Notes under the pieces: generated by a model
The model's database searches: none
Seen by the model: the letters and a program-made list of their open reading frames with translations, nothing else
Told to the model about the DNA's origin: nothing
Made by a program: the position numbers and the translations under genes
From: Macrostomum lignano
Lineage: Eukaryota
Length of the DNA: 56,511 nt
NCBI GenBank assembly: GCA_002269645.1
Contig: NIVC01001108.1
Location: forward strand, 1-56,511
Reading direction: 5' to 3'
Shown here: positions 2,656-44,638 of the stretch, one piece after another
Layout of the letters: every line of letters starts with the position of its first letter
How positions within the stretch are numbered: position 1 is the stretch's first letter

Positions 2656-3393
2656 ATGAAGACGCAAATTTTAACTTTTTTAATCATCAAACAGCTGGTG
2701 TCAGTCTGGGCGCAGACGTGCCCTGATCCGTTTAGCCTGGAAGGTGACAAATGCCTGTTCGTGAGCACATCGAAGAAGCACACCTGGTGCTCGGCTTATC
2801 AGAAGTGCGCGTCAATCGGAGGTGAGCTCGTCAACTCGTTCGAGTCGATTCTGCTGCTAAGTGGCATGCCGATTCTTGACTGTTTCTGCATTGTGTGGCT
2901 CGGAGTGACCGACCTGGCCGATGAGAGAGGCTCCAGCAAGTCGGGCTGGCAACGCATTAACGGAAACGGCATCCTGCCTTTGAACGATACCATATGGAGC
3001 GATAATGATCCAAATTTCGGTGCGGTAGAGAACTGCATCACGCTTGTCTTTGGCAAAATCGCCAACCGAAAGTGCTCGGAGAAGTTCGGACTGGCGTGCG
3101 AGTGGACTCCGAGTCCGACAGTCGACCCGCTGCCACCACCAACTCATGCCAATTGGCAGCTGACGGAGTTCAAGCGCAGCATCTGCCATGAGAGCACGGA
3201 GTACTGCCACACTGACCTGCTGCAGGTGAAGAACTCAATGCACTGCGTTGCGGCCGGCATGCGTGCTGGCAACTGCAGACACGTGCTGTACAACAGCAAG
3301 CTGAGAACTTGCCGTCTTCTGCTGTTCACCGACGCTCAGGTGGAGGAGGAGATCGAGACGAGCGCCGACTGGGTGAAGTTTTCTCTGCCCTGA
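2656..3393 (+). CDS. Secreted C-type lectin domain protein with C-terminal PAN/apple-like domain, single exon, 245 aa
   Basis: Hydrophobic N-terminal signal (MKTQILTFLIIKQLVSVWA); CTLD motifs CPDPF..C, CASIGGELV, VWLG, WSDNDPN, ENC, C..ACE; Pro-rich linker; HC..C..C...YNSKLRTCRLL pattern typical of PAN/apple. Confidence 0.88.
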   Translation: MKTQILTFLIIKQLVSVWAQTCPDPFSLEGDKCLFVSTSKKHTWCSAYQKCASIGGELVNSFESILLLSGMPILDCFCIVWLGVTDLADERGSSKSGWQRINGNGILPLNDTIWSDNDPNFGAVENCITLVFGKIANRKCSEKFGLACEWTPSPTVDPLPPPTHANWQLTEFKRSICHESTEYCHTDLLQVKNSMHCVAAGMRAGNCRHVLYNSKLRTCRLLLFTDAQVEEEIETSADWVKFSLP

Positions 3394-6338: not shown

Positions 6339-9300
6339 TCACCAGCGTCTCCCACGGGACGCAGAGCTCCGGAACGAGGCTCTGAACTCAGTAGACCTGG
6401 TGCCACCTGCGCCGGTGGCCCTCTCGGCCAGGTAGCTGTCATAATTGGCCGATATTTTGCCCAGTTCGGCGCGTAGATTCTCCTCGAAATGCGACATCGA
6501 TTCGTTGTCGGTGTCTCGCCGGCCTGGGATTAGCGGGATTGAATTTTTACTTCGGAGTCTTGTTCATGTGCAGAAGACTCTATACTCTATCTGACAATCT
6601 ACCTTACACCAGGGTCTTTAGCAACAGGGGCTTTAGCACCAGGGGCTTTAGCACCAGGGGCGCCAGCACCAGGGGCTTTAGCACCAGGGGCGCCAGCACC
6701 AGGGGCGCCAGCACCAGGGGCGCCAGCACCAGGGGCTTTAGCACCAGGGGCTTTAGCACCAGGGGCGCCAGCACCAGGGGCTTTAGCACCAGGGGCGCCA
6801 GCACCAGGGGCGCCAGCACCAGGGGCGCCAGCACCAGGGGCGCCAGCACCAGGGGCGCCAGCACCAGGGGCGCCAGCACCAGGGGCGCCAGCACCAGGGG
6901 CGCCAGCACCAGGGGCGCCAGCACCAGGGGCGCCAGCACCAGGGGCGCCAGCACCAGGGGCGCCAGCACCAGGGGCGCCAGCACCAGGGGCGCCAGCACC
7001 AGGGGCGCCAGCACCAGGGGCGCCAGCACCAGGGGCGCCAGCACCAGGGGCGCCAGCACCAGGGGCGCCAGCACCAGGGGCGCCAGCACCAGGGGCGCCA
7101 GCACCAGGGGCGCCAGCACCAGGGGCGCCAGCACTTGGAATCATTGGGAGAACAATAGAAGCGTCTAATGCTACTAATGCAGTAGTCTATCAACCTAGAT
7201 GTAAAATGCTTTATTAAATTTTTAACTTACTACTAGCATATAGAGCGCTGTAAGTAGTGGTACCAACAGCTCCTCCAGAGCCAATCGAAGACAGATAGTC
7301 CTCGAACTGCTCGTACTGATGACGCTGCGTTGATTGCAGTGCCGGCCGGAAACTCACGGCCGACAGTTCGGGATGATAGCGCCGACTTCCAGCCAAGACA
7401 GACCCCGATAGCTGACGCCCTCGGGCGTTCCGATAACTGCAGTTGCTTTCCTTATTGAGTAGGAATATTTTATGACAGTTTCATTAAAAAAACACCAATT
7501 TTGTGGTGTGGCATTAAGACGGTTTTTCAAGCGTAGCTGTTTATTGGAATGACCAAAATATATACCTGAGGTCTCCTCGGTAGGAGACGTGATTCAGGTC
7601 ATTTCACGGTGCCCTCACCCCACGGTGACCTCATCCCACGGTGACCTCACCCCACGGTGATCTCATCCCACGGTGACCTCAGCCCACGGTGATCTCAGCC
7701 CACGGTGCCCTCACCCCACGGTGCCCTCACCCCACGGTGACCTCAGCCCACGGTGATCTCAGCCCACGGTGCCCTCATCCCACGGTGACCTCACCCCACG
7801 GTGACCTCATCCCACGGTGACCTCATTCCACGGTGCCCTCACCCCACGGTGACCTCAGCCCACGGTGATCTCATCCCACGGTGACCTCACCCCACGGTGA
7901 CCACGGTGTATAAAATTGTGAGCAGGACAGCTCAGCGCCGCTTCCCGAGAAGCGAAGTTGAGAGTTTAATAGACGGCTTACCAATTTTATTTTCTCCAAT
8001 TCTTCAAGCTGATACCGGAGCCTTTTGGCCACATCAATGGCTGCTTGGCAGACAAGACGGGCTGGCACCAGTCCCTTGTCCAGGGCCCGCTGTAGAATGG
8101 CTTCGCTGCATCTGTTCAGATCCAGGGCATCGAATACTTGCTGACGCTCTGACTCGGGCGGCAACGGATCAGCTGGGGGATCACAGTATGTATTCAGAGA
8201 TTAACAGCATAGGGATTATTGACGAATTCGAATAATCCTTGGAAACGTCTTTAGCAGTCAGTCATTCACAAACCAATCCTTTACAAACCAATCCTTCACA
8301 AACCAATCATTCACACACCAATCATTCACAAACCAATCCTTTACAAACCAATCCTTTACAAACCAATCCTTTACAAACCAATCCTTCACAAACCAATCCT
8401 TTACAAACCAATCCTTCACAAACCAATCCTTTACAAACCAATCCTTCACAAACCAATCCTTCACAAACCAATCATTCACAAACCAATCCTTTACAAACCA
8501 ATCCTTCACAAACCAATCATTCACAAACCAATCCTTTACAAACCAATCCTTCACAAACCAATCCTTCACAAACCAATCCTTCACAAACCAATCCTTCACA
8601 AACCAATCCTTCACAAACCAATCCTTCACAAACCAATCCTTCACAAACCAATCCTTCACAAACCAATCCTTCACAAACCAATCCTTCACAAACCAATCCT
8701 TCACAAACCAATCCTTCACAAACCAATCCTTCACAAACCAATCCTTCACAAACCAATCCTTCACAAACCAATCCTTCACAAGCAGACTGCCTCACCAGAG
8801 AGCAGAGCCTCGGCCGCCTCGTACAGAGTGTCGTGGCTGGTCCGATAGTCTGGCGACATGCTGGCTGCCAGTTTGACAAAGTCGGCCACAGGAAGCCCCC
8901 CAGCCCGGGCCAGATCCAGCAGGTGACAGTCAATCACGCACGAGAGGACTTCGGGCACAACGCCGTCATTTTTCACAGTGTTCTCCACAATCTCGCACAG
9001 TACAGGGGCCGGCGTGTCTCTGAGTTCGTCCTGGGTGAAGCGGTGCAGCGCGCCGCCCGCAAGTTGCAGCAGTTTGGCGCGACACTCCGGGCTGGCCGTC
9101 TCGCTAACGCGAAGCGCTCGTCGAATCCAATCGGCATTGATCGACTCGGACAGCGGCGTGTCGGCTGGCAGGGCGAGAATCACCCTGTCGAGTACTTCGA
9201 CGCCGGATTCTCTGGTTAACTGTTCACTGGATTTTTCGTCGGCTTGTTTATCCACTCGGTCGTCGTGGTCCTCTTCCTGGTCTTTGTGATCATCTTTTTC

Positions 9301-10173
9301 CGCGTCGGCCTCGCGCTCCGGTGGCGTTGGCGCCTGCTGCGGCGGGTTCAGGTGCCGGCTGAATGCCTGATCCAGGTAGCGGGCGGCCAGCTCAGCCAGC
9401 GGTCGTCGACGCAGATGGGCGTTCGTTTCGGCTTTCAACTCGTCCTCTGTAGTAGCGGCAGCCGCGGCTGAAGACGATTCTGACGGGCAGACAGCTTGGA
9501 TCAGTTGAAGGAATCGAGGCAACGGCAGGCTCAGCAGATGATTCTCAGTGTCGCGCTGCTGCTGCTGCTGCTGTCTGCTGGAGTACGGAGAAGAGAAGAC
9601 GCGGTAGTGGTGATGGTGCCGGTAGAAGTGCTCGTCACTATCAGAGCTGAGCGCGGCAGCGGCAGCCGCCGAAGCCTCTGCCCGATGCCAGATGTCCAGC
9701 AGCGCGGCGAGACACCTCTCTGGGAGTTTCGTTTCGTCAGTTGGCCGACCGACGGAGCCGCAGCTGGTCAGCAGGTCGACAATGGGGCCGGCCGATTGGC
9801 CAACCTTGGCCGAATCAAGCAGCTCGCTGAGGTACCGGTCGGTCAGGTCGGCCAGGTTGCCTCGGCCGCGCATTGCCAGCCGTTCGGCCGCGCAGTGCAA
9901 TTGGACGACATTGTCCGGCGAGATGTCGATTCGTTTGTTGTAGCAGAAATCGGCAATCAAGTTGAAGCAGTCGGCCCCGCCGGGAAAGTCCGATTCGAGT
10001 TCGAGCTCCGACACACTGGAATCGGCCAGGAGTTCGCGGAATCGGTCAGATTTGATGAAGAGCGGGAACCGGTGCAGCTTCCACTCAGATTTGACGCCGT
10101 CAGCGGCAAGTCGGACCGTGAGGTCGGACAGTTCGCCAGAGTCTCGGTAGCGGACAAGATCTTGGACTGGCAT
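6339..10173 (-). CDS. BTB/POZ + NPH3-domain (NRL, NPH3/RPT2-like) protein, 4 exons, ~657 aa
   Basis: Exons 10173-8796, 8172-7982, 7450-7231, 6523-6339; GT..AG with matching phases 1,0,1 (exon 3 acceptor is a weaker AAG). BTB motifs SDLTV..WKLHRFPLFIKSDRF and FPGGADCFNLIADFCY..ISPDNVVQLHCAAERLAM match plant NRL consensus (FHLHKFPLLSKSG; PGGAEAFELAAKFCY..NVAALRCAAEYLEM). HDTLYEAAEALL and FDALDLNRCSEAILQRA..VPARLVCQ match the NPH3-domain end; coiled-coil follows. Confidence 0.85.
6607..7133. repeat. 15-bp GC-rich minisatellite (AGCACCAGGGGCGCC), ~35 copies, intron 3 of the NPH3-like gene
   Basis: Tandem units read directly. Confidence 0.97.
7605..7908. repeat. 16-bp minisatellite (CACGGTGACCTCACCC), ~19 copies, intron 2 of the NPH3-like gene
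   Basis: Tandem units read directly. Confidence 0.95.
8262..8781. repeat. 15-bp minisatellite (ACAAACCAATCCTTC), ~34 copies, intron 1 of the NPH3-like gene
   Basis: Tandem units begin ~15 nt from the splice donor. Confidence 0.97.
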
Positions 10174-10715: not shown

Positions 10716-10807
10716 TGCAATCCCAGGTGTAGCTGGCAACAGAGCTTTCAGGGTCTTCCTAACGATCCTAGGTAAGAGGCTGCCTTGAGATTAGTGATTT
10801 TTCTGCT

Positions 10808-11986
10808 TAGTGTGTCAGGATTGACGATTAGTGAGTCAGGATTGACGATTAGTGAGTCAGGATTGACGATTAGTGAGTCAGGATTGACGATTAGTGAGTC
10901 AGGATTGACGATTAGTGAGTCAGGATTGACGATTAGTGAGTCAGGATTGACGATTAGTGAGTCAGGATTGACGATTAGTGAGTCAGGATTGACGATTAAT
11001 GAGTCAGGATTGACGATTAGTGAGTCAGGATTGACGATTAGTGAGTCAGGATTGACGATTAGTGAGTCAGGATTGACGATTAGTGAGTCAGGATTGACGA
11101 TTAATGAGTCAGGATTGACGATTAGTGAGTCAGGATTGACGATTAGTGAGTCAGGATTGACGATTAGTGAGTCAGGATTGACGATTAATGAGTCAGGATT
11201 GACGATTAGTGAGTCAGGATTGACGATTAGTGAGTCAGGTTTGACGGTTAATGAGTCAGGATTGACAATTAGTGAGTCAGGATTGACGATTAGTGAGTCA
11301 GGATTGACGATTAATGAGTCAGGATTGACGATTAATGAGTCAGGATTTACAATTAGTGAGTCAGGATTGACGATTAGTGAGTCAGGATTGACGATTAGTG
11401 AGTCAGGATTGACGATTAGTGAGTCAGGTTTGACGATTAATGAGTCAGGATTGACAATTAGTGAGTCAGGATTGACAATTAGTGAGTCAGGATTGACGAT
11501 TAATGAGTCAGGATTGACGATTAATGAGTCAGGATTGACGATTAATGAGTCAGGATTTACAATTAGTGAGTCAGGATTGACGATTAGTGAGTCAGGATTG
11601 ACGATTAGTGAGTCAGGATTGACGATTAGTGAGTCAGGATTGACGATTAATGAATCAGGATTGACAATTAGTGAGTCAGGATTGACGATTAATGAGTCAG
11701 GATTGACGATTAATGAGTCAGGATTTACAATTAGTGAGTCAGGATTGACGATTAATGAGTCAGGATTGACGATTAATGAGTCAGGATTAACGATTAGTGA
11801 GTCAGGATTGACGATTAGTGAGTCAGGATTGACGATTAGTGAGTCAGGATTGACAATTAGTGAGTCAGGATTGACGATTAATGAGTCAGGATTGACGATT
11901 AGTGAGTCAGGATTGACAATTAGTGAGTCAGGATTGACGATTAGTGAGTCAGGATTGACAATTAATGAGTCAGGATTGACGATTAT
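10808..11986. repeat. 21-bp satellite (GTGAGTCAGGATTGACGATTA), ~56 copies
   Basis: Tandem units; nearly every one contains TGAGTCA. Confidence 0.97.
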
Positions 11987-14653: not shown

Positions 14654-15547
14654 ATGGTGTCTAAGCAGCACTTTGCCGCAGTCCTGACCAGTCTGGCAGC
14701 CCTCACACTGTTGGCGGCCCTGACCAGCGGCCAGTCAGGCAAGTCCGAATTGCCAGACTGTCCCAGCAACGAGTCAGTTTGCAACGCTGTGCTGCACTTC
14801 CCGGACAGAATAGTGGATCAGGGCCGCTACTGCAACGGCTGCGTGAACTGCGCCCTACCGTCAGCTGAGTCGGACATTCCGGCCACTCTCGCCGCGATGT
14901 CCGACCGCAGCTTCTACTGGCAGCACTGGGAGGACCCCAACATGCGAGTGCAGTTCGTCAAGTGCAGCCCGATGCCCAAGCGAGCCAGGTGCAGCCTCGC
15001 CGACCAGAAACCGGCGGCGGTCTTTGCCAGCCCGATGTCCACCTGGAGTCCCCGGCTGCTGCAGCACCGCTGCAACTGCCCGGACGCCCAGTTCCAGCTG
15101 AGGTCCTGGCGGCCGGCCGAGAACGGCGCCGACTGGCGCTACGACTTCCACTGCCACCTGCCTGTCTGCTCGGTGGCAACCGCCGACAGTAAAGGAACCG
15201 CTGCAGCTGGCCTCGACTCGACGAGTCGCGATGCCGACGATGACGTTTGCGTTGTGAAACGTCGTGCCAGCGAGAATTCGCCATCCAGCGTGGAGTTCAA
15301 GTGCACCTGTCCGCCCGAGTATCACTGCGTTGTCAAGGAGGTTCAAACGAAGAAGCCGGCTTCAGAGCATCAGGGACACGCCGGCGGAGGCGGCGGTGGC
15401 GTCGGCGGCGGAGGAGACGGCGGAAGAGGCGGCAGCGGAGACGAGTCGGAATGGAGGGCCGACCCAGCGGGCGGCGGGCAGATCAGCCGGCGAAGATGCC
15501 AGAAGACGCACCATCAGAGCGGGGCGAACTCGACCACCGGGCATTGA
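14654..15547 (+). CDS. Secreted Cys-rich Argos/giant-lens-like protein, single exon, 297 aa
   Basis: Signal peptide (AAVLTSLAALTLLAALTSG). Cys spacing and neighbouring residues parallel the three Argos modules: LPDCP..VC..RYC; FVKCSPMPKRARC; HRCNCP..WRYDFHC; LPVC..VCVVKRR..FKCTCPPEYHC; terminal C. Family call is from remembered motif similarity only. Confidence 0.7.
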   Translation: MVSKQHFAAVLTSLAALTLLAALTSGQSGKSELPDCPSNESVCNAVLHFPDRIVDQGRYCNGCVNCALPSAESDIPATLAAMSDRSFYWQHWEDPNMRVQFVKCSPMPKRARCSLADQKPAAVFASPMSTWSPRLLQHRCNCPDAQFQLRSWRPAENGADWRYDFHCHLPVCSVATADSKGTAAAGLDSTSRDADDDVCVVKRRASENSPSSVEFKCTCPPEYHCVVKEVQTKKPASEHQGHAGGGGGGVGGGGDGGRGGSGDESEWRADPAGGGQISRRRCQKTHHQSGANSTTGH

Positions 15548-18490: not shown

Positions 18491-21400
18491 CTAATTCAAT
18501 CCAGCCGCGTCATTGTCCATGGCATTTTCTAAGAAATAGAAATTCTCTCGAACCAACTGCTGGCAGCTGTCGTAGCTGAGCAGGCAGTCGTGCAGAGCCG
18601 CCAATTCCGACTGCACCGCTAGCGAGTCCGGATCGCGCCTGGGAAATACGGTGGAAGTCAGCAGCTTATCTAGCAGGTAGTGCAGCCACATCAGATTTGT
18701 TCGAGGATTGAATTTGCGCCAATCGTCTGAGCAGTCGCGGCGCATCATTCGGTACACCTGCGTGGGTTTTGGATGGGTGTTGAGCGGCGTGACTGGTGCT
18801 GATGCAGGCTCAGTGTCTGTACGGACAGACACAGTAAATACAGACAGAGACACAGTCAATACAGAGACACAGCAATACAGACAGAGACACAGCCAATACA
18901 GACAGAGACACAGCCAATACAGAGACACAGTCAATACAGACAGAGACACAGTCAATACAGACAGAGACACAGTCAATACAGACAGAGACACAGTCAATAC
19001 AGACAGAGACAGTCAATACAGACAGAGACACAGTCAATACAGACAGAGACACAGTCAATACAGACAGAGACACAGTCAATACAGACAGAGACACAGTCAA
19101 TACAGACAGAGACACAGTCAATACAGACAGAGACACAGTCAATACAGACAGAGACAGTCAATACAGACAGAGACACAGTCAATACAGACAGAGACACAGT
19201 CAATACAGACAGAGACAGTCAATACAGACAGAGACACAGTCAATACAGACAGAGACACAGTCAATACAGAGACACAGTAAATACATAACCAGATACGGAC
19301 ACAACCAACGCAGTACATTGTACTATTAGTAATAGATAAACAGTGAGATCACCTCAAACTGGTAGTCGCCATCGCCAACAAAGATGCCCTCGTCGCCGGA
19401 CATATCAATATAAAGCACGTAGCCAGGCGCCGGGCTGACCCGACTAACAGTGAAATCAATGATAGCCACTTCCAGGCCTTCGCAATTGATTGCGTAATTA
19501 TGATCGGCCACTCGGTAGCGGATTTTGACCCGGCCAGACCGGCGGACCAGCACATTGTTCCAGTGCAGGTCGCGGTGCTCGAACTGGAACTGCGACTCGG
19601 CGGCGGCCAGAGACAGGGCCAGCTGGAGGATCACGGAGCGGGCCTCGCGGTAGCAGCCAAAACGGAAGGCCGGCAGGGGACAGCCCGCGAATCTTTTTGG
19701 GGAAGGATTATGAGTCACTGAATATATATGGGTCATGGGTTATGAGTCACTGAATATATATGGGTCATGGGTTATGAGTCATTGAATATATATGGGTCAT
19801 GGGTTATGAGTCATTGAATACATATGAGTCATGATTTATGAGTCATTGAATACATATGGGTCATGATTTATGAGTCATTGAATACATGAGTCATGATTTA
19901 TGAGTCATTGAATATATATGGGTCATGAGTCATGAAATATTGAATATATATGGGTCATGGGTTGTGAGTCATTGAATACGAGTATATATGAGTCATGAGT
20001 CATTGAATACATATGGGTCATGATCCATTGGCTATACAATCATAGAATTAAAATCGAGGAAAACATTACAAAGATTACGTATATACTACTTACTTGTACT
20101 CCAGCAGTAGCCACTGCTGCCTTGCCGGTAGGAATTCCGGATTTTCGTTATCAGACACTCGAACTCCGGCATTAAACGCTTCCCACTCCTCGGACAGGCG
20201 TGGGTGCAGTTTACCGCGAACAATGCTAGCATTGAGCAGCTGGACAAAGTTGCCAGTTTTATTACTCCGATACCTATAGGCCAGGTTAGTCAGTTTGCGA
20301 GAGATCAACAGTTCGGGCAGGACTTCGTCGAACATTTTCTGCGGTTCGCAGTTCACCAGCTGGCCGCCCTCGATAGGGAACAGTTTCAGGGCCACCTCCT
20401 GGCGACCGCGGCGAGTGGCGTAGACCTCGCCGTAGACGCCTTCGCCAACTTTGTGCAGGCCGTCCAGCATCTCCTGGGATAGGACGTCCTCCCATCTGGA
20501 GTTTGTGAAAGAGAAAGAATTTGATTAAAGAACCTAATCTAAGAACTAAAGAACTAATTTGGGGCTAAATTGGAATCTCGGCTTGGCTCTGCTCGTGCAA
20601 TCAACGCCCAGCTTGAGGGACAAACCATGAAGTGTACATGCCTAACCACAAATAAAGTTAGGGCCGGTTGTTGTGTGTGACGATGTCGCCTAAAGTGCAC
20701 CAGGATTCACACAGTCCATTCTCTGCTCTTCTAATTGGCGCCCATGTACATGTCTCAAGGAGTATCTTAGTTGATGTGACCGCGCACAGAGACTCGGACC
20801 CGGATAAGATGGGCCTACCCTAGGTCTGATCAATTAGTGTAATTCTGTGCGTCATGACGCATCAACTTCCAATTTTGTCATCTCGAATTTCAACCCTCAG
20901 ATGCCGAATTGGCAGGCTGGAGGATTCTTCCTGAACTTCAAGACTTCAAACTCCCACTCCGCAGCGCACACAACCTGTCTTTCTCTTGGTTGTATCTCTT
21001 AGACAAAGAAATCTCTTGTGCAATCTATTATAAGCAGCAGACCCACCTAACGCAGTCGCTCTGACGGCACAGCCGCAATACGCAGTCGCGATATTCGCAC
21101 TGCTGATAAAGTCGCCAATAGCTCTGTTCCAAAGATTGGTCCAATAATTTCTCGTCGTCTTCCAAAGCAACATTGGCGGAAGCATTCACTGGCAATTTAG
21201 GACAGCGCTTGCTAGGGGACAGGCCAGTCTCGAGATGAACGCCACTAGCATCGTGTTGACTACTACTATTAGTACTATTGTTATCACGCTCCTCCTGTTG
21301 TCGATTAGCGATAGCGGCTGCAACGCCTGCGTCAACTTCGATACGACGTTTAGCGACGCGTTTCAATTTGCGAGCCATATCCTGCTGGCTACTATTAGTA

Positions 21401-22185
21401 GCAGAAGTAGCAGAAGTAGCCACCGATTGTTGGCTATTTCTAGCAGATGCAGCTGAGGCGGCGGCGCCGTTGCTATGCTTCAACTCGGAAGAAGCGGACG
21501 CGGCCAGAACGGCAACAGGCGACAATGGTGACAGAGCTACAATGGCCGCTCTGAGCAACGCGTTAGTAGCAACAGATTCGTTATTCTTCGACGATGACAG
21601 ATGATTGACAGCTTCGTCGCAAGCTTCCAGACAGGGTGGGGATAGCGACTCCTGACGCTCGTGTTGCTGACTTTGCTGGCTGCGAAGATTATAATTACTA
21701 GCGGCTCGACGAGTTCGCCTAGTTGGCATGGGAGTCGAACTCGGGACTGCGACCTGTTGTCGATCAGCGGCTGTTAAAATCGGCGGAGGCAGCGCTTCCG
21801 ATGTGGACGGCGCAGCTTTTCTACGTTGAGATTTTTTACCTGTCAACTGTTTGACTGGCGAAACGGCCTGACAACTATCGTCTGACGAGGTGATTGCCGC
21901 GAAAGCAGAAGACGAAGCCAAAGAAGAAGCAACAGAGGCAGCGGCGCCGCTTTGCTTTTGTTGGCGTTTCTTTTTTGAGAATCGTAAATTGCGTCTCAGC
22001 GGCGGTTGACGAGAATTAGACAGTGAGGAATTAACTGATGAAGACTCGGCGGACAAAGAGTCCATTGCCCGACTATTGGCAGTCAGCACTGCGGCCGCGG
22101 CAGCTGCGGCGGCGCGTCGTCGAACGCCTGGACGACGAGTTGTTGAGGTCGTCGTCGACAAAGACGAGGAACCCCTTTTAGGCAT
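18491..22185 (-). CDS. haspin: Haspin-family Ser/Thr kinase, 4 exons, ~715 aa
   Basis: Exons 22185-21047, 20495-20094, 19692-19353, 18757-18491, phases 2,2,0 consistent. Kinase motifs KVGEGVYGEV, VALK, FEHRDLHWNNVL, DFTVSR (haspin DYT-type), GDGDYQFEVYRMM, NLMWLHYLLDKLL; long basic, disordered N-terminus as in haspins. Confidence 0.95.
18824..19282. repeat. 21-bp minisatellite (ACAGACAGAGACACAGTCAAT), haspin intron 3
   Basis: Direct. Confidence 0.95.
19708..20025. repeat. ~32-bp minisatellite (GAGTCATTGAATATATATGGGTCATGGGTTAT), haspin intron 2
   Basis: Direct; variable units. Confidence 0.9.
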
Positions 22186-22399: not shown

Positions 22400-22454
<55 letters not shown>

Positions 22455-22455
22455 C

Positions 22456-22486
<31 letters not shown>

Positions 22487-22525
22487 CACAGACAGACAGA
22501 CAGACAGACAGACAGGCAGACAGGC

Positions 22526-22586
<61 letters not shown>

Positions 22587-22617
22587 CACAGACAGACAGA
22601 CAGGCAGGCAGACAGGC

Positions 22618-22669
<52 letters not shown>

Positions 22670-22670
22670 G

Positions 22671-22750
<80 letters not shown>

Positions 22751-22811
22751 CGCAGACAGACAGACAGACACACAGACAGACAGACAGACACGCAGACAGA
22801 CAGACAGACAC

Positions 22812-22858
<47 letters not shown>

Positions 22859-22897
22859 CACAGACAGACACACAGACAGACAGGCAGGCAGACAGGC

Positions 22898-22953
<56 letters not shown>

Positions 22954-22954
22954 G

Positions 22955-23042
<88 letters not shown>

Positions 23043-23063
23043 CGCAGACAGACAGACAGACAC

Positions 23064-23096
<33 letters not shown>

Positions 23097-23114
23097 TAGA
23101 CAGACAGACACTCT

Positions 23115-23194
<80 letters not shown>

Positions 23195-23217
23195 CACAGA
23201 CAGACAGACAGACACGC

Positions 23218-23274
<57 letters not shown>

Positions 23275-23523
23275 CGCAGACAGACAGACAGACACACAGA
23301 CAGACAGACAGACACGCAGACAGACAGACAGACACACAGACAGACAGACAGACACGCAGACAGACAGACAGACACGCAGACAGACAGACAGACAGACAGA
23401 CACGCAGACAGACAGACAGACACACAGACAGACAGACAGACACGCAGACAGACAGACAGACACACAGACAGACAGACAGACACGCAGACAGACAGACAGA
23501 CACACAGACAGACAGACAGACAG
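22376..23523. repeat. (GACA)n microsatellite, ~1.15 kb, upstream of haspin
   Basis: Direct. Confidence 0.98.
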
Positions 23524-24953: not shown

Positions 24954-27900
24954 CTACTCAGCTCGAATCCCCAGATTGGCCTCGGCGCCAGTGACGGCGG
25001 CTGCGCTGGCGGCAGCCTCAGCGTCGGCCGCGTCGGCAGCGGCGGCAGCAAACTGGGCCAGCGACTGAAGCGGCTCAACGTCCGGGTCGGAATCCTGGCG
25101 CTGATGCTGATCGGAGGACTCGCCTGCGGCGGCAGCTGCTGGCCGATGGTCGTCGGCGGCAGACGGCCCAGATTTGCTTCCGTCACCGCCGCCACCGATG
25201 ACAACGTTCTGAGCGTCGTTCATGGCAGACTGGACGACCAAGGCTTGGCTTAGCGTCTCCTGACTGACTGGGCCTTCCAGGTGGATGAGCACGCTCACTG
25301 GCTCCTTGGAGCCGGGCAGGGTGACCTGAAATATGCGTGTAATAATAGGGATTTTAAAGATGGGAGGCTGGCATAGCAACTGACACTCGAAGAGGCTGGC
25401 CCAGCAACTGAGGATCTGGGAGGCTGGCCCAGCAACTGACACTCTGGAAGGCTGGCTCAGCAACTGAGGATCTGGGAGGCTGGCCCAGCAACTGACACTC
25501 TGGGAGGCTGGCCCAGCAACTGAGGATCTGGGAGGCTGGCCCAGCAACTGAGGATCTGGGAGGCTGGCCCAGCAACTGACACTCTGGGAGGCTGGCCCAG
25601 CAACTGAGGATCTGGGAGGCTGGCCCAGCAACTGAGCATCTGGGAGGCTGGCCCAGCAACTGAGGATCTGGGAGGCTGGCCCAGCAACTGACACTCTGGG
25701 AGGCTGGCCCAGCAACTGAGGATCTGGGAGGCTGGCCCAGCAACTGAGGATCTGGGAGGCTGGCCCAGCAACTGAGGATCTGGGAGGCTGGCCCAGCAAC
25801 TGAGGATCTAGGAGGCTGGCCCAGCAACTAAGGATCTGGGAGGCTGGCCCAGCAACTGACACTCTGGGAGGCTGGCCCAGCAACTGAGGATCTGGGAGGC
25901 TGGCCCAGCAACTGAGGATCTGGGAGGCTGGCTCAGCAACTGAAACTCTGGGAGGCAGGCCCAGCAACTGACACTCTGGGAGGCTGGCCCAGCAACTGAG
26001 AATCTGGGAGGCTGGCTCAGCAACTGAGGATCTGGGAGGCTGGCTTAGCAACTGAGGATCTGTGAGGCTGGCCTAGCAACTGAGGATCTGGGAGGCTGGC
26101 TCAGCAACTGAGAATCTGGGAGGCTGGCTCAGCAACTGACACTCTGGGAGGCTGGCTCAGCAACTGAGGATCTAGGATTCTGAAAGACAATGCCATTGCC
26201 AACCAACGGGAGAATCTGAAAAGGCTAAATAGCCCAAGTCAGTACATGAGAAGCGGCAGCATTATAGCAACTAATTAAACCGCACCTGCACAGTTCTGGA
26301 GCCACTGGCGCCAGAGTCGCCTATGCCGGACATGACGCCGCTCTCGTCTTCAATGCTGGCAACTCCGCCGCTATCGCCGTCCAGGCCGCTGATAACGGCA
26401 GTCGGCGGCGGCTGCACGGTGGCCGACGACGGCAGCGAGCGGTTGAGCGCGCCGCGGCAGGCCTGAAAGAGGAACAGTTTGATCAAATAAGTTAGCTAAC
26501 ACACAAACTACTAAGAGTAGCTGATCAGGACTAATGCTATATGCTTAAAGTGGCTAGCGCAGTAAGTTAAGCACAGTTGGCCGCAGTTAGTACATGGTTT
26601 TAAATAGAACAAAAACTTCAGCTAGGGTTCTGTAAGCATGGAGGCTCAGCAAGTTAACCAAATGCACTCACATCAACGTGCTGCTGGTAGCGCTCAACGC
26701 TCATCTCGCCGCAAATGATTTTTTCACAGTTAGCGCAACCGTAGGACACTACGGGTCTGGCTAGCGGCTTGCCGCTGTTGCAGCCTCGCTCCCGGTGCAG
26801 CTTCAGCAGGCTGCTGAATTTGAACTGGGCGTCGCACTCGTTGCAGCGGTATCTGAGGTTTTGGTGGCACTTTTTAATCATCGTCTGGTACCTTGGATAG
26901 CTAATCCTATTGCTTAGATCTTCAATCCCAAGATCTGGATCCCTAATCCTATTGCTTAGATCTTCAATCCCAAGATCTGGATCCCTAATCCTATTGCTTA
27001 GATCAATAATCCCAAGATCTGGATCCCTAATCCTATTGCTTAGATCAATAATCCCAAGATCTGGATCCCTAATCCTATTGCTTAGATCAATAATCCCAAG
27101 ATCTGGATCCCTAATCCTATTGCTTAGATCAATAATCCCAAGATCTGGATCCCTAATCCTATTGTTTAGATCTTTAATCCCAAGATTTGGATCCCTAATC
27201 CTATTGTTTAGATCTTTAATCCCAAGATTTGGATCCCTAATCCTATTATTTAGATCTTTAATCAAAAAGATTTGGATCCCTAATCCTATTGTTTAGATCT
27301 TTAATCCCAAGATTTGGATCCCTAATCCTATTATTTAGATCTTTAATCAAAAAGATTTGGATCCCTAATCCTATTATTTAGATCTTTAATCAAAAAGATT
27401 TGGATCCCTAATCCTATTGTTTAGATCTTTAATCCCAAGATTTGGATCCGCAATCCTATTGCTTAGATACTGAATCTCAAGAATTATATCCCTACTATTG
27501 TTCTTAAGATCATTAATCCCAAGATTTGGATCCCCAATTCTATTGCTTAGATCATTAATCCCAAGATTTGGATCCCTAATCCTATTGTTTTAAATCATAA
27601 ATCACAAGATTCGGATCCCTAATTATAATCTCGTTTAGATCTTAATCCCAGGATCCTTAATCCCATCTAAGAATTTGCTCCTCAATCCCAGGATTCAGAT
27701 TCCGTGCTGTAGTCACTAGATCCCTAATTCTAAGACGATTGTCTCTAACCCCGGAATAAAAGATTTCTAATCCATACCTCGGCTTGTTCAGATGATCAAC
27801 CTTCATGTGGTCAACCAGGTCAGTCTTGGCGTTCCAACCTTCAAACACCTGGCCGCATCTGGCGCAGCCAAAGCGCAGGCGTTTGCCAGAGTGCGACTGC

Positions 27901-30900
27901 AGATGCCGGCCCAGCTCCAGCTTGTTGTGGCAGGTTTCGCCGCAGAAATCGCAGAACATGACGGTCTCCATGGGCGGGATGGCGCTCAGCACCGACTCCA
28001 GGTTCACGTTGGCTGCGGACTGGAAGTGTATGGACGAGCAATTAGATACATAGATAGATGGATAGATAGATAGATAGATGGATAAATGATAGATGGATAG
28101 ATAGATAGATAGATGGATAGATGATAGATAGATAGATAGATAAATGATAGATGGATAGATAGATAGATAGATAGATAAATGATAGATGGATAGATAGATA
28201 GATAGATAGATAACTATCCATCCAGACAGACAGACAGACACAGAAAATCAGGCAGACAGACAGACAGACAGACAGACACAGACAGGCAGGCAGGCAGGCA
28301 GACAGACAGGCAGACACACAGACACAGACAGGCAGGCAGGCAGGCAGACAGACAGGCAGACACACAGACACAGACAGGCAGGCAGGCAGGCAGGCAGACA
28401 GACAGGCAGACACACAGACACAGACAGACAGGCAGGCAGGCAGGCAGGCAGACAGACAGGCAGACACACAGACACAGACAGGCAGGCAGGCAGGCAGGCA
28501 GACAGACACAGACAGACAGGCAGGCAGGCAGGCAGGCAGACAGACAGGCAGACACACAGACACAGACAGGCAGGCAGGCAGGCAGGCAGACAGACAGGCA
28601 GACACACAGACACAGACAGACAGGCAGGCAGGCAGGCAGACAGACAGGCAGACACACAGACACAGACAGGCAGGCAGGCAGGCAGGCAGACAGACAGGCA
28701 GACACACAGACACAGACAGACAGGCAGGCAGGCAGACAGACAGGCAGACACACAGACACAGACAGGCAGGCAGGCAGGCAGGCAGACAGACAGGCAGACA
28801 CACAGACACAGACAGACAGGCAGGCAGGCAGGCATGCAGGCAGACAGACACACAGAGAGGCAGGCAGGCAGGCATGCAGGCAGACAGACACACAGAGAGG
28901 CAGGCAGGCAGGCATGCAGGCAGACAGACACACAGAGAGGCAGGCAGGCAGGCATGCAGGCAGACAGACACACAGAGAGGCAGGCAGGCAGGCATGCAGG
29001 CAGACAGACACACAGAGAGGCAGGCAGGCAGGCATGCAGGCAGACAGACACACAGAGAGGCAGGCAGGCAGGCATGCAGGCAGACAGACACACAGAGAGG
29101 CAGGCAGGCAGGCATGCAGGCAGACAGACACACAGAGAGGCAGGCAGGCAGGCATGCAGGCAGACAGACACACAGACAGACAGGCAGGCAGGCATGCAGG
29201 CAGACAGACACACAGAGAGGCAGGCAGGCAGGCATGCAGGCAGACAGACACACAGACAGACAGGCAGGCAGGCATGCAGGCAGACAGACACACAGAGAGG
29301 CAGGCAGGCAGGCATGCAGGCAGACAGACACACAGAGAGGCAGGCAGGCAGGCATGCAGGCAGACAGACAGACACACAGATTCTCACCTGCTGGTCGAAG
29401 AAGCGCAGCTGCTGATAGGCCACCTTGGCCATGTCAGTCCGCTTGAGCGGCACAGCCAAGTTCAGCACGGTGTTGGCCCCGCCACCGCCGGAGGCAGGCG
29501 ACCTTGATCGCATCCTGGACAGCACCGTCTGCGGCGGCTCCTTCCACTGCATGAACACTCGATGGACGGTGCGCTGATGATGGCGCAGGCGGCTGAAGCT
29601 GGGGAAGTAGACGGGCACTGGTGGCACTCGTACGGCGTCTCGTCGACGTGATCGACGGCGATGTGACGCTCCAGCGCGGTGATCTTTTCGAATTGGGCGC
29701 TGCACAGCTCGCAGGTGAGCTTCAGCTCGTCTAAGTTTCCTGTCGAGAGCAGGTAATGAGCTGTTTAGATATAGAAATCAAAGCGGCTAGGATCGAACAC
29801 AAAGACTCCAAGACAGACTCCAAGACAGGCTTAAAGACAGACTCCAAGACAGGCTTAAAGACAGACTCCAAGACAGGCTTAAAGACAGACTCCAAGACAG
29901 GCTTAAAGACAGACTCCAAGACAGGCTTAGAAACAGACTCCAAGACAGGCTTAGAGACAGACTCTAAGACAGGCTTAGAGACAGACTCCAAGACAGGCTT
30001 AAAGACAGACTCCAAGACAGGCTTAGAAACAGACTCCAAGACAGGCTTAGAGACAGACTCCAAGACAGGCTTAGAAACAGACTCCAAGACAGGCTTAGAG
30101 ACAGACTCCAAGACAGGCTTAGATACAGACTCCAAGACAGGCTTAGAGACAGACTCCAAGACAGGCTTAGAGACAGACTCCAAGACAGCCTTAAAGACAG
30201 ACTCCAAGACAGGCTTAGAGACAGACTACAAAACGGGCTCAAAGGTTGAAAGACAGGCTCAAAGACGGGCCTAAAGACAGACTTAGATACAGGCTTAAAA
30301 ACAGACTCCAAGACAGACTCCAAGACAGTCTCTAAGACGGGCTTGTAGACAGGCTTATAGACAGGCCTAAAGACAGACTACAAGACAGGCTTAAAAAGAG
30401 ATCTGAGACGCAGAGACAGACATCTGACAGGCAGGCACTAGCTCACCGCCAACTGAATCAGCCGAGGCATTGAAATCGTCCATATCAATAGAAGCGGCAG
30501 AGTCTTGCAGTACAGCGGCGCCACCGCTGGCTCGCTGGCGATAGACCCGAACCTGCTGCTGTCTCTTACCACTGCCCTGTCCCTGGTGCACAGCGGCATA
30601 GTGATTAGACAGCAGGTGCACCCGATCGAATGAGGAACCGCACACGGTGCATAGAAACGGTTGCACCAAAGATTCCGCATTGTTAGACGAGTCTCCGCCA
30701 GCCAAGGAGGCGGCGGCGGCAGCGGCCAGAGCGGCAGAATTGGTGCCAACCCGCTGACGGGCCCGCCTACGCAGACCTGGCGCAATCAGCAGCTTGTAGG
30801 CACCGCTCTCAGCTAGGGGATGCTCGGCTTTAACATGCCGACGCAGACTGATGTAAGTTTCAAATGTGCTGTCGCATTCTAGACAGGCGAAAGCTCGAAC

Positions 30901-34312: not shown

Positions 34313-37300
34313 CCTTTGTCTTTCTGCCAGAACATATGGAGGATATTAGAGATGCGCCATAACATTACAACACATGCTTTCTTGCAATTGCTACTGTTTA
34401 CCACTGGTCTGTAGCAATAGCACTTCTGCATCACATGCAATAAGAGCATGTCATCCCATACAACTAACTAGGTAGTCATGGTGCTAGCCAGGTTTGTAGG
34501 GAATGCAACTGGGTATTTATACTTATAATGGGCTAGATAGCCTGCGAGACACATAGGCATACTGAATACTCACTATATGCTTTCTATACTATGCACTAAG
34601 TATGACTTTAGCTATCCTTTCAGATACACCTACTGTTTATGACAATTCTATAAATGTAAGGTATTCTAAATAAATTTAAATAATCAATATGTAGTGCATA
34701 TAATTGTAACAACTGCAAGGTCCTTTATTGTTGCAACAGCAAAAAAGGTCTTATTGTTGCAATTACAAAAAAGTCCTTTATTGTTCCTATGCCTTATGGG
34801 CCCCACATATAAAGCATGACTTCTGGCTGCATGCCACGCGCAACTTCTATGGCAATCAAAAATGTTCCTATGTAGCTGGCATATCCACAAGATTATGGTA
34901 TTTATTTACTATTAAATGATTTTTAGTAGTAGACTAGCAATCTAGTGCGGCCTCCCTTCGGGGCGCCCAATAAGCATGGAGCAAAAATAGTTAATGGAAA
35001 ACAATTAAAAAAGCACATTTTCTTAAACACCAATTCCTTCTTAACTTTTAAAAATCACCTTATTCATGTAAAATTGTCACGGACAATGATATTTGCTATG
35101 AATCTATTTTTTTCTAAAATTAACAAATATACAACAAAATATAACTTTCACAAAGATAACAAACATTACCTCTAAATAGAAAATATTCCCAAGACAGCAA
35201 GCATCCCTCCAGATAGCAAGCACCCCTCCAAAAGTAAGCAACCGCAGATAACAAGCATCCCCCAAATATTGTAGAAGCATCCACCCAGATAGCAAGCATC
35301 TGCAGATAGCAAGCATCCCCAAATATTGTAGAAGCATCCACCCAGATAGCAAGCATCCCCCAAATATTGTAGAAGCATCCACCCAGATAGCAAGCATCCC
35401 CCAAATATTGTAGAAGCATCCACCCAGATAGCAAGCATCCCCCAAATATTGTAGAATCATCCACCCAGATAGCAAGCATCCCCCAAATATTGTAGAAGCA
35501 TCCACCCAGATAGCAAGCATCCCCCAAATATTGTAGAAGCATCCACCCAGATAGCAAGCATTTGCAGATAGCAAGCATCCTGCAGGCAGCAAGCATTTCC
35601 CAAATATTGTAGAAGCATCCACCTAAACAGCAAGCATAGCAAGCAAGAATCCATAAAAAGCAAACATCCCTAGATAGAAAGAATCCCATACATGTAGCCA
35701 AGCTTATCAAGCGCAGTAATCCTTTGTTTGCCAAGCGCAGTAATCCTTGGTCTATCAAATACAGTAATCCTTGGTCTATCAAGTGCAGAAATCCTTGGTT
35801 TATCAAGTGCAGTAATCCTTGGTATATAAACTGCAATAATCCTTGGTTTATCAAGTGCAGTAAGTCTTGGTTTATCAAGTGCAGAAATCTTTGACTTATC
35901 AAGCGAAGTAATCCTTGGCTTATCAAGTGCAGTAATCCTTTGTTTATCAAGTGCAGAAATCCTTGGTTTATCAAGTGCAGTAATCCTTGGTATATAAACT
36001 GCAGTAATCCTTGGTTTATCAAGTGCAGTAAGTCTTGGTTTATCAAGTGCAGAAATCTTTGACTTATCAAGCGAAGTAATCCTTGGCTTATCAAGTGCAA
36101 TAATCCTTCGTTTATCAAGTGTAGAAATCCTTGGTTAATCAAGTACAGTAAGCCTTGGTCTAACAAGTGCAGTAAGTATTGGTTTATCAAGTGCAGTAAG
36201 TCTTGGTTTATCAAGTGCAGTAAGTCTTTGTTAATCAAGTGCAGTAATCATTGGTTTATCAAGTGCAGTAATCCTTGGCTTATCAAATGCAGTAAGTTCT
36301 GGTCTATCAAGTGTAGAAATCCTTGGTTTATCAAGTGCAGTAAGTCTTGGTTTATCAAGTGCAGAAATCCTTGGTTTATCAAGTGCAGTAAGTCTTGGTT
36401 TATCAAGTGCAGAAATCCTTGGTTTATCAAGTGCAGTAAGTCTTGGTTTATCAAGTGCAGAAATCCTTGGTTTATAAAGTGCCGTAAGTCTTGGTCTATC
36501 AAGTGCAGAAATCCTTGGTTTATCAAGTGCAGTAAGTTTTGGTTTATCAAGTGCAGAAATCCTTGGTTTATAAAGTGCCGTAAGTCTTGGTTTATCTACT
36601 GAAGTAATCATTGGTTTATCAAGTGCAGTAAGTCTTGGTTTGTCAAGTGCAGAAATCCTTGGCTTATCAAGTGCAATAATCCTTGGTTTATCAAGTGCAG
36701 TAAGTCTTGGTTAATCAAGTGCAGTAATCAATGGTTTATCAAGTGCAGTAATCCTTGGCTTATCAAGTGCAGTAAGTCTTGGTTTCTCAAGTGTAGAAAT
36801 CCTTGGCTTATCAAGTGCAGTAATCCTTGGTTTATCAAGTGCAGTAATCATTGGTTTATCAAGTGCAGTAAGTTCTAGTCTATCAAGTGCAGTCATCCTT
36901 GGTTTATCAAGTGCAGTAATCCTTGGCTTATCAAGTGCAGTAATCCTTGGTATATCAAGGGCAGTAAGGGGGTTTATCAAGTGCAGTAAGTTCTGGTCTA
37001 TCAAGTGCAATAATCCTTGGCTTATCAAGTGCAGTAAGTCTTGGTTTATCAAGTGCAGTAATCCTTGGTCTATCAAGTGCACTTGATGGGCCAAGTCTTG
37101 GTTTATCAAGTGCAGAAATCCTTGGCTTATCAAGTGCAGTAATCCTTGGTTTATCAAGTGCAGTAATCCTTGGTTTATCAAGTGCAGTAAGTTCTGGTCT
37201 ATCAAGTGCAATAATCCTTGGCTTATCAAGTGCAATAATCCTTGGTTTATCAAGTGCAGTAATCCTTTGTTTATCAAGCGCAGTAGTCCTTGGTTTATCA

Positions 37301-44309: not shown

Positions 44310-44545
44310 ATGCAGGTGAGACAGTAGAGGCTTCCAGGTAAGATAACAGATTTTCAGATGAGACGTAGCCTTCCAGGTGAGACAGTATAGGGACTTCCAG
44401 GTGGAAAAGTACAGAGACTTCCAGGTGAGACAGTATAGAGACTTCCAGGTGAGACAGTAGGGGACTTCCAGGTGAGACAGTAAGGGACTTCCAGTTGAGA
44501 CAGTAAGGGACTTCCAGGTGAGACAGTAAGGACCTCCAAGTAAGA
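44310..44545. repeat. ~23-24-bp minisatellite (ACTTCCAGGTGAGACAGTAAGGG) downstream of the 4TM gene
   Basis: Direct. Confidence 0.85.
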
Positions 44546-44638
44546 CCATTCTTTGTGTTATTCAGAAAAAATCACGTCAAACATTGCTTTAACCAAATAG
44601 ATTCAATATTAATTTAGAGTGCAGTCATTCCCCAGGCA

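Follow-up and report, generated by a model that had tools for sequence, protein, structure and literature searches.

Contig NIVC01001108.1 of the flatworm Macrostomum lignano (assembly GCA_002269645.1, positions 1 to 56,511 of the forward strand; this whole stretch of 56,511 nucleotides is referred to as the window throughout) contains a gene for a protein that combines a BTB domain with an NPH3 domain and is homologous to the NPH3/RPT2-like (NRL) proteins of plants. The gene and all of its features described below lie on the minus strand. It starts with an ATG at 10173, ends with a TGA stop codon at 6339-6341 and is composed of four exons separated by three GT..AG introns. The splice model was derived from the listing of open reading frames (ORFs) together with tests of donor and acceptor combinations, one of which preserves the reading frame. 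The spliced coding sequence comprises 1974 nt and specifies a 657-aa product, the C-terminal end of which reads ..RASFRSSASRGRRW. A first inspection of the window without database searches, here called the sequence-only reading, had proposed a spliced gene with three GT-AG introns and a 657-aa product, and its coordinates were reproduced exactly.

Exon 1 (8796..10173) corresponds to a 465-codon ORF that runs from the ATG at 10173 into a GTGAGG donor at 8795. It provides residues 1-459 plus one nucleotide and encodes the BTB domain, 3-box-like helices, the N-lobe of the NPH3 domain, an acidic disordered linker and most of the NPH3 C-lobe. Intron 1 (8173..8795; 623 nt, phase 1, GTGAGG..CCCCAG) sits after 'HDTLYEAAEALLS' and is followed by exon 2 (7982..8172, residues 460-523), which continues the frame of exon 1 and encodes the end of the NPH3 domain including a helix that aligns with the 'LIP' region of plant NRLs. 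The same exon 1-exon 2 junction is present in an existing UniRef model, A0A1I8J8Q3 (P0001 in our searches). Intron 2 (7451..7981; 531 nt, phase 0, GTAAGC..AATAAG) leads to exon 3 (7231..7450, residues 524-596 plus one nucleotide), which contributes the end of a long helix and then a disordered tail rich in Ser, Arg and Tyr. Acceptor 7450 and donor 7231 are the sole frame-preserving pair for this exon; with the other sites considered (acceptor 7436 or 7447, donor 7264) the frame was broken or the AG was missing. Intron 3 (6524..7230; 707 nt, phase 1, GTAAGT..TCCCAG) precedes exon 4 (6339..6523), which encodes residues 597-657 with a predicted helix at 605-632 and a basic, aromatic C-terminal tail, followed by the stop codon.

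Domain architecture and homology with plant NRL proteins

Both domains were recognized by the profiles of Pfam at scores above the curated cut-offs. The BTB/POZ domain (PF00651) covers residues 9-102 (9868..10149) with 25.3 bits compared to a cut-off of 20.5, and the NPH3 domain (PF03000) was found in the 657-aa product with 44.8 bits compared to a cut-off of 27 (E 1.6e-11). The best NPH3 stretch, residues 411-482 (8105..8943, spanning intron 1), corresponds to profile positions 183-254 of 258. The hidden Markov model comparison that the sequence-only reading had suggested as a check thus returned an NPH3 match in addition to the BTB match. When an alignment of 28 animal sequences was compared with an alignment of 20 plant NRLs using hhalign, the two profiles matched with a probability of 100% and an E of 6e-55 over 428 columns, and the match reaches from the BTB domain through the end of the NPH3 domain. 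Within the window protein, homology with plant NRLs covers residues 12-512 (8015..10140, spanning intron 1), and the product of exon 2 aligns to the plant sequence ..ERKRLC..MDCQKLS..NERLP.R.VVQVLF. In pairwise BLASTP comparisons with plant-type sequences, identity amounts to 33-39% over residues ~16-158 and to 23% over residues 16-528. An AlphaFold2 (AF2) model of a plant NRL, mapped via the hhalign alignment, has the same order of ~20 helices as the flatworm model. With the Pfam cut-offs passed and an alignment of this length and significance, the assignment as a genuine BTB-NPH3 protein of the NRL type, as originally proposed, holds.

The AF2 model of the window protein, calculated with the animal alignment, reached a mean predicted local distance difference test score (pLDDT) of 78.3 and a predicted template modeling score of 0.69 and consists of a BTB domain, for which the pLDDT exceeds 90, followed by an all-helical domain. 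The stretches modeled with low confidence (residues 186-194, 285-312, 541-602 and 634-657) are probably disordered. The product of exon 3 has a pLDDT below 50 over most of its length, and its 'SRRY' segment aligns with a paralogue from the same organism (P0002). Long helices are predicted at residues 497-538 and 605-632. The first of these aligns to the plant LIP region ('LRVVVQVLF'), where the flatworm sequence is ARLVCQAAI..; the heptad pattern is weak, with L, I, V or M at 5 of 12 a/d positions in the best register. The coiled-coil that had been proposed downstream of the NPH3 domain is therefore backed only in part, by the predicted long helices and not by the heptad signal, and a simple heptad and hydrophobic-moment check established neither a coiled coil nor an amphipathic membrane helix.

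The BTB domain is of the long form and is accompanied by 3-box/BACK-like helices (AF2 helices 3-12, 107-125 and 129-141). Foldseek aligned the model with the BTB domain of KEAP1 (149-152 columns) and with the A55 BTB-BACK/CUL3 structure (157 columns), and with 55 bits the animal profile also recognized KLHL3 (positions 4-134). All matches obtained in sequence and fold searches of the PDB, namely BCL6, ZBTB8A, KEAP1, KLHL3 and vaccinia A55 (solved with CUL3), are confined to the BTB domain and the 3-box-like helices, and there is no solved structure of an NPH3 domain among them.

An animal BTB-NPH3 family and its origin

A search with a profile of five flatworm sequences among 1.84 billion (1.84e9) representative proteins yielded 1100 matches at E<=1e-3, 103 of them at E<=1e-30. 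The best ~60 clusters from outside Macrostomum are of the animal type; they scored 150-435 bits, above the first plant NRLs, and begin directly with 'M(D/E)F..FR.SGELSD', just as the window protein does. Thirty clusters, taken from the best ~150 of the 1100 matches, were assigned to named organisms. Among animals, these are the nemertean Tubulanus polymorphus, the annelid Owenia fusiformis, the bdelloid rotifer Adineta vaga, the gastropods Haliotis, Physella, Littorina and Bulinus, the cephalopod Octopus, the parasitic flatworms Opisthorchis, Paragonimus, Cichlidogyrus and Hymenolepis, the hemichordate Ptychodera flava and the homoscleromorph sponges Corticium candelabrum and Oscarella lobularis. 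Most of the named animal homologues are located on Mb-scale chromosomes. On the plant side, the named matches comprise Taxus and a sequence from assembly GCA_003427395, which is cited in papers on Chara braunii; no fungus, chlorophyte or protist occurs among the 30 named clusters. Pfam recognized the BTB domain in all 28 animal members scanned and the NPH3 domain in 17 of the 28 at E<=1e-3. When the single protein or two alignments served as queries in separate protein-homology searches, for which the word index seems to have been saturated, the matches were limited to Macrostomum, relatives from Corticium and two flatworm-like Logan contigs, whose identity to the window protein is 55-57% across the NPH3 region.

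Two observations on individual members may be added. In Corticium candelabrum (OY729830.1, our locus L008) the genes are intronless and arranged in tandem, with a second BTB/NPH3-like gene ~750 bp downstream, and several further paralogue clusters stem from this sponge (P0078, P0149, P0177). An environmental group from metagenome contigs (P0061/P0070, e.g., contig L005) is placed beside the rotifer sequence in the tree described below; its proteins have an NRL-type BTB domain followed by 'NL(I/V)(D/R)VA(G/S)EILD' repeats, and no recognizable NPH3 C-lobe.

A neighbor-joining (NJ) tree was calculated from 94 sequences of at least 480 aa on the basis of 492 trimmed columns with 100 bootstraps. 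Animals and streptophytes were separated in 100 of 100 replicates, and the window protein falls outside the streptophyte NRL clade and within the animal clade; the comparison with plant and invertebrate homologues called for by the sequence-only reading thus gave a clear split. Within the two clades, the sponge group (99/100), the land plants (98/100) and the gastropods (95/100) are recovered, and the flatworm group is recovered in 71 of 100 replicates. Gene structure provides a further character. A phase-1 intron located after an 'HDxL(Y/F)E..E.LL' helix is found in the same or an adjacent alignment column in the window gene, in Tubulanus, in Ptychodera and in the two Logan contigs; the Corticium genes are intronless and the introns of Chara are at other positions. 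The window protein displays the traits that we propose for the metazoan clade, i.e., a direct M..(D/E)(F/L)..(F/Y)R.SGELSD start, the phase-1 intron and a C-terminal [KR]-[WYF]-COOH, the latter trait being proposed for spiralians only.

Taken together, the window gene is very probably an intact M. lignano member of a BTB-NPH3 family that metazoans have inherited vertically and whose homology with plant NRLs extends through both domains, up to the end of the NPH3 domain. The data favor an inheritance of this kind that goes back to the bilaterian ancestor or beyond, probably to early Metazoa. Descent within animals combined with loss in model lineages is likewise supported; among the 30 named clusters, none comes from a classical model animal.

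Several points weigh against these conclusions. The match to the Pfam NPH3 model is mostly to its C-terminal third, and this domain is missed at E 1e-3 in 11 of the 28 animal members. The trees are NJ trees only and were midpoint-rooted without an outgroup. Of the three splice junctions, the one between exons 1 and 2 is the sole junction backed by an earlier gene model. The statements that the family is confined to animals and streptophytes and that it is absent from model animals are incomplete with 30 clusters named from the best ~150 of 1100 matches, and for the latter statement we additionally rely on the survey by Stogios et al. 2005 (PMC1257465) and the plant literature. Finally, any function of the animal members is at present entirely a deduction.

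One rival explanation is a plant NRL gene that was recently transferred into Macrostomum or into flatworms only. In its favor, the family is described as plant-specific. In a survey of 17 genomes, BTB-NPH3 proteins were found only in Arabidopsis (Stogios et al. 2005, PMC1257465), and a paper from 2024 states that the NPH3 domain is plant-specific and 'not found in metazoans' (PMC11313873). In addition, the BTB region of the window protein is closer to that of plant NRLs, with the 33-39% identity given above, than to that of any solved animal BTB domain (best 21 bits). However, sponges, molluscs, a hemichordate, a rotifer, an annelid and a nemertean all possess homologues. The sequences from animals are monophyletic and do not fall among those of streptophytes, their grouping tracks taxonomy, an intron is common to several bilaterian phyla, and identity to plant proteins over the full length is only ~23%. 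Animal-wide homologues, a separate clade and a shared intron therefore exclude, for all practical purposes, a recent horizontal gene transfer and also contamination, and we consider such a transfer extremely improbable. The sequence-only reading had offered an ancient lineage lost in model animals or an old horizontal transfer as alternatives and had named many animal orthologues as what would rule out a recent event. The first alternative fits the multi-phylum homologues, the undivided animal clade and the shared phase-1 intron, and a transfer, if meant as a recent one, does not. The many animal orthologues at the same time lower the novelty of the window locus itself.

A different question, which concerns the origin of the family and not the status of the window gene, is how animals and streptophytes came to share it. 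They may both have it from a common ancestor, with many losses since then, or it may have passed once, very long ago, from an early streptophyte alga to a stem animal or the other way round. We consider such an ancient transfer somewhat less probable than not. Every named match is metazoan or streptophyte, including the one from the assembly cited for Chara braunii, other eukaryotic groups are missing among the 30 named clusters, vertical descent would require many independent losses, and the copies of Corticium are intronless and arranged in tandem. On the other hand, few of the 1100 matches were named and other lineages may hold members, no giant-virus carrier emerged from one IMG/VR pattern scan, and the two clades are deeply diverged and reciprocally monophyletic, which is compatible with either scenario.

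In our literature searches, which combined NPH3 with Macrostomum, Metazoa, spiralians and the '-like' names used by NCBI, no paper on animal NPH3 proteins was found. The animal BTB-NPH3 family is old and undescribed in the literature, yet it is already labeled by the annotation pipelines of UniProt and NCBI: the orthologues from Haliotis and Octopus carry names such as 'BTB/POZ domain-containing protein At5g48800-like', 'At1g30440-like' and 'phototropism 2-like', the last two of these being found among the Octopus entries. What emerges is a moderately surprising observation at the level of the family, which is neither peculiar to the window locus nor a demonstrated signaling module, as which the sequence-only reading had presented it as a candidate.

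The Macrostomum copies and their surroundings

Macrostomum lignano contains at least three diverged paralogues. UniRef A0A1I8J8Q3, which was automatically named 'NPH3 domain-containing protein', is 100% identical to the window protein over 373 aa (about residues 153-523), and this identity establishes which organism the gene belongs to. Two other copies, located on scaffolds of 721 kb and 883 kb, are 40-43% identical to it. The window copy is the most divergent of the three, its protein contains low-complexity inserts of His, Gln and Ala, and it lacks the Y-x-P-Y motif found in the tails of its relatives, all of which could point to a decaying paralogue (pseudogene) of the better-conserved copies. 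This explanation is nevertheless very unlikely, as four exons joined at canonical splice sites give an unbroken frame of 1974 nt, the AF2 model is confident, and the gene has kept the residues that are invariant in the family as well as the intron position and the terminal R-R-W.

Plant DNA within the flatworm assembly, whether by contamination or by mis-assembly, would have the unexpected domain as the sole point in its favor, and its probability is vanishingly small. The three diverged paralogues include copies on large M. lignano scaffolds, the closest relatives of the protein are other animals and not plants, the flanks carry other eukaryotic genes, and the introns contain minisatellites in the style of those that fill a third of the window. 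The earlier rejection of contamination is thus borne out, although two of the details cited for it are weakened. According to Tandem Repeats Finder, each intron is largely occupied by one minisatellite, i.e., a 15-mer repeated 34 times in intron 1 (8265-8781), a 16-mer repeated 19 times in intron 2 (7605-7902) and a 15-mer repeated 34 times in intron 3 (6620-7134). The description of these arrays as host-type satellites is correct insofar as the 31 arrays of the window (~33% of its length) are similar in kind, but the units themselves are private and absent outside the gene. Likewise, the position of the gene between animal genes is loosely true: a haspin kinase gene is a neighbor on one side (18491-19736, minus strand; Pfam Haspin_kinase, 91 and 46 bits for ORFs 19326-19736 and 18491-18997), but the other side offers an ORF with a sub-threshold match to C-type lectins.

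The haspin-type kinase gene appears to span 18491-22185 on the minus strand with several exons and a 21-bp satellite at 18820-19270 in an intron; ORFs 20090-20470 and 21028-22185 resemble its upstream exons, which correspond to the N-lobe of the kinase and a Ser/Ala-rich N-terminus. The lectin-like ORF (2656-3393, plus strand) looks like that of a secreted protein and reached 17.4 bits, below the cut-off of 22.6. A second secreted-looking ORF (14654-15547, plus strand) is Cys-rich, has a Gly-rich tail and is without a Pfam match.

The 31 mini- and microsatellite arrays in the window (1-56511) have periods of 4-62 bp; examples are a 21-mer repeated 56 times (10807-11985), a 24/48-mer repeated 112 times (35704-38398), (AGAC)n (22402-23523) and (CAGA)n (28223-29380). 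Many of these arrays generate long spurious ORFs on both strands. A 28-bp unit, TGGGAGGCTGGCCCAGCAACTGAGGATC, occurs both at 25361-26177 and at 45407-45690, 19 kb apart, unlike the intron satellites of the NRL-like gene, which are unique in the window. The region from ~38400 to 52000 is AT-rich (GC content 0.29-0.38) with few repeats and no long ORFs; the left half of the window is GC-rich and laden with satellites. Rfam and tRNA scans of the window gave no matches.

The C-terminus, possible function and comparison with known systems

The C-termini of plant and animal members differ. Plant-type sequences end with RxSx[SAT] in 23 of 53 cases, and the C-terminal consensus of the plant alignment is RRRRHSIS with R, S and S invariant in the set of 20 sequences. 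In NPH3, this RxSxS end is the site described for phot1 and 14-3-3 at S744 (bioRxiv 10.1101/2024.06.17.598829). The sequence-only reading had pointed out an RSSAS string in the window protein as a possible counterpart. This string (residues 648-652, 6357..6371) lies inside the protein, the two full-length paralogues of M. lignano do not share it, and none of 102 animal-type sequences ends with RxSx[SAT]. Its interpretation as an NPH3-like 14-3-3 site is therefore unsupported.

Instead, the protein terminates with RGRRW-COOH (6342..6356), a basic and aromatic end that is typical of the family. Ten of 11 gene models from free-living spiralians end with [KR]-[WYF]-COOH (RRW, RKW, TKW, PRY, HRY, QRY, HRF, SRF and YRY). 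The two M. lignano paralogues have SRKW and SRRW, Tubulanus has TKW, Owenia PRY, Haliotis and Littorina S(H/Q)RY, Physella HRF, Bulinus SRF and Adineta YRY; several of the spiralian ends carry S-x-[KR]-aromatic. The last 25 residues of the window protein have a net charge of +5 and include three aromatic residues. Such a tail would be compatible with docking to acidic lipids or to a protein domain; its composition is not evidence for either. In many bilaterian members, Y-[FW]-P-[YF] furthermore precedes the [KR]-aromatic end by a few residues (TYFPYS, VYFPYT, SFWPYT, SYWPFN, NYPYY). This element is lost in the window paralogue, and sponges and parasitic flatworms are without either tail motif.

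Judged by its architecture, the protein may form a dimer or an oligomer via its BTB domain, and the BTB and 3-box regions could dock CUL3. The all-helical NPH3 domain might then serve as a partner-binding or GTP-hydrolyzing module and the disordered basic and aromatic tail ending with [KR]-[WYF]-COOH as a docking or membrane-contact element, which in animals would replace the plant phototropin/14-3-3 switch at RxSxS-COOH. Plant NPH3 is reported to act together with CUL3, and a role as CUL3 adaptor or scaffold is plausible for the animal protein as well. The phi-x-E motif, which we take to be a CUL3 contact preceding strand beta4, may be represented by V54-S55-E56 in the window protein as judged by eye. 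At the place of this candidate, before the ..V.L..FPGG strand, many relatives including the members from sponges and the hemichordate have M-x-D, again as seen by eye.

The protein could, alternatively, not be a CUL3 substrate adaptor but a membrane- or cortex-associated scaffold or a trafficking GTPase, as proposed for NRL5 and for NPY/SIB. GTPase activity has been reported for the NPH3 domains of seven plant NRLs (NRL5 and six others), and RABs and VAMP721/722 are bound by NRL5 (PMC11313873). In plants, NRLs are components of cortical polarity (bioRxiv 10.64898/2026.08.17.745269), a helix aligned to the plant self-association motif 'LIP' (bioRxiv 10.1101/2024.06.17.598829) is present in the flatworm protein, and its tail is basic and aromatic. 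However, no GTP-binding motif has been defined for NPH3 domains that could be checked in the sequence; the paper on GTPase activity gives none, and P335 is variable even between plant NRLs (PMC11313873). The architecture of BTB domain and 3-box is also that of CUL3 adaptors, and the two roles are not mutually exclusive. A role of the scaffold or GTPase type in place of the adaptor role appears rather unlikely for the flatworm protein.

In plants, NPH3/NRL proteins have central roles in phototropism, chloroplast movement, the polarity of auxin transporters and drought responses, and the biochemical role of the NPH3 domain as such is still unsettled. An animal clade that extends from sponges to hemichordates and includes many spiralians contradicts the generalization that the domain is plant-specific, and it offers a natural comparison free of phototropin, 14-3-3 and PIN biology. 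We tentatively put forward, as an idea that may well need revision, that plants did not invent the BTB-NPH3 module, that it predates the split between animals and plants or was exchanged early, and that the animal branch keeps an ancestral, phototropin-independent activity under the control of the [KR]-aromatic-COOH end; this activity might be that of a CUL3 adaptor, of a cortical or trafficking scaffold or of a GTPase. If this is true, the long-unclear core function of the NPH3 domain becomes testable in animals amenable to RNA interference such as Macrostomum. The family also adds an uncharacterized group of BTB proteins, possibly CUL3 adaptors, to non-model animals including parasitic flatworms and molluscs. 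The contribution of the window locus itself is modest, as it represents one divergent paralogue of a family that is visible but undiscussed in public databases.

Among known systems, adaptors of the BTB-BACK-Kelch/KEAP1 type share the long-form BTB domain and its N-terminal helix with the flatworm protein, and the following helices superpose on the beginning of the 3-box/BACK region of KEAP1, KLHL3 and A55. In contrast to these adaptors, the flatworm protein is without a Kelch, MATH or zinc-finger substrate module, its post-BTB region is an NPH3 domain without a counterpart in the PDB fold search, and sequence similarity is restricted to ~100-150 residues.

The closer parallel is with the plant NRLs (NPH3, RPT2, NCH1, NPY/MAB4/ENP, NRL5 and SIB/NRL2), which have the same architecture as the animal proteins: in both, an N-terminal BTB domain leads via 3-box-like helices to the all-helical NPH3 domain, after which come a long helix, located where plants have the LIP or coiled-coil element, and a disordered tail. 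Motifs common to both are LHKFPL, FPGG..F..(V/A)ADFCY, NV..LRCAAE(Y)L.M, LP.....(W/F) and CR..L as well as D.YL...A..g.L....F..L......R...D.L(Y/F) and (I/M)D...LS.e.L..A.....(I/L)P. The plant signatures WWxED, DGLYRA(I/V)D and NERLP are absent from the animal proteins including that of the window, where PRF.., HDTLYEAAE and DKGLVP are their equivalents. Phototropins, AGCVIII kinases and PINs, the known partners of plant NRLs, are not known to occur in animals. Compared with plant NRLs, the animal proteins do not have an N-terminal extension, their NPH3 domain is split by an acidic low-complexity insert, and their C-terminus is [KR]-[WYF]-COOH instead of RxSxS-COOH.

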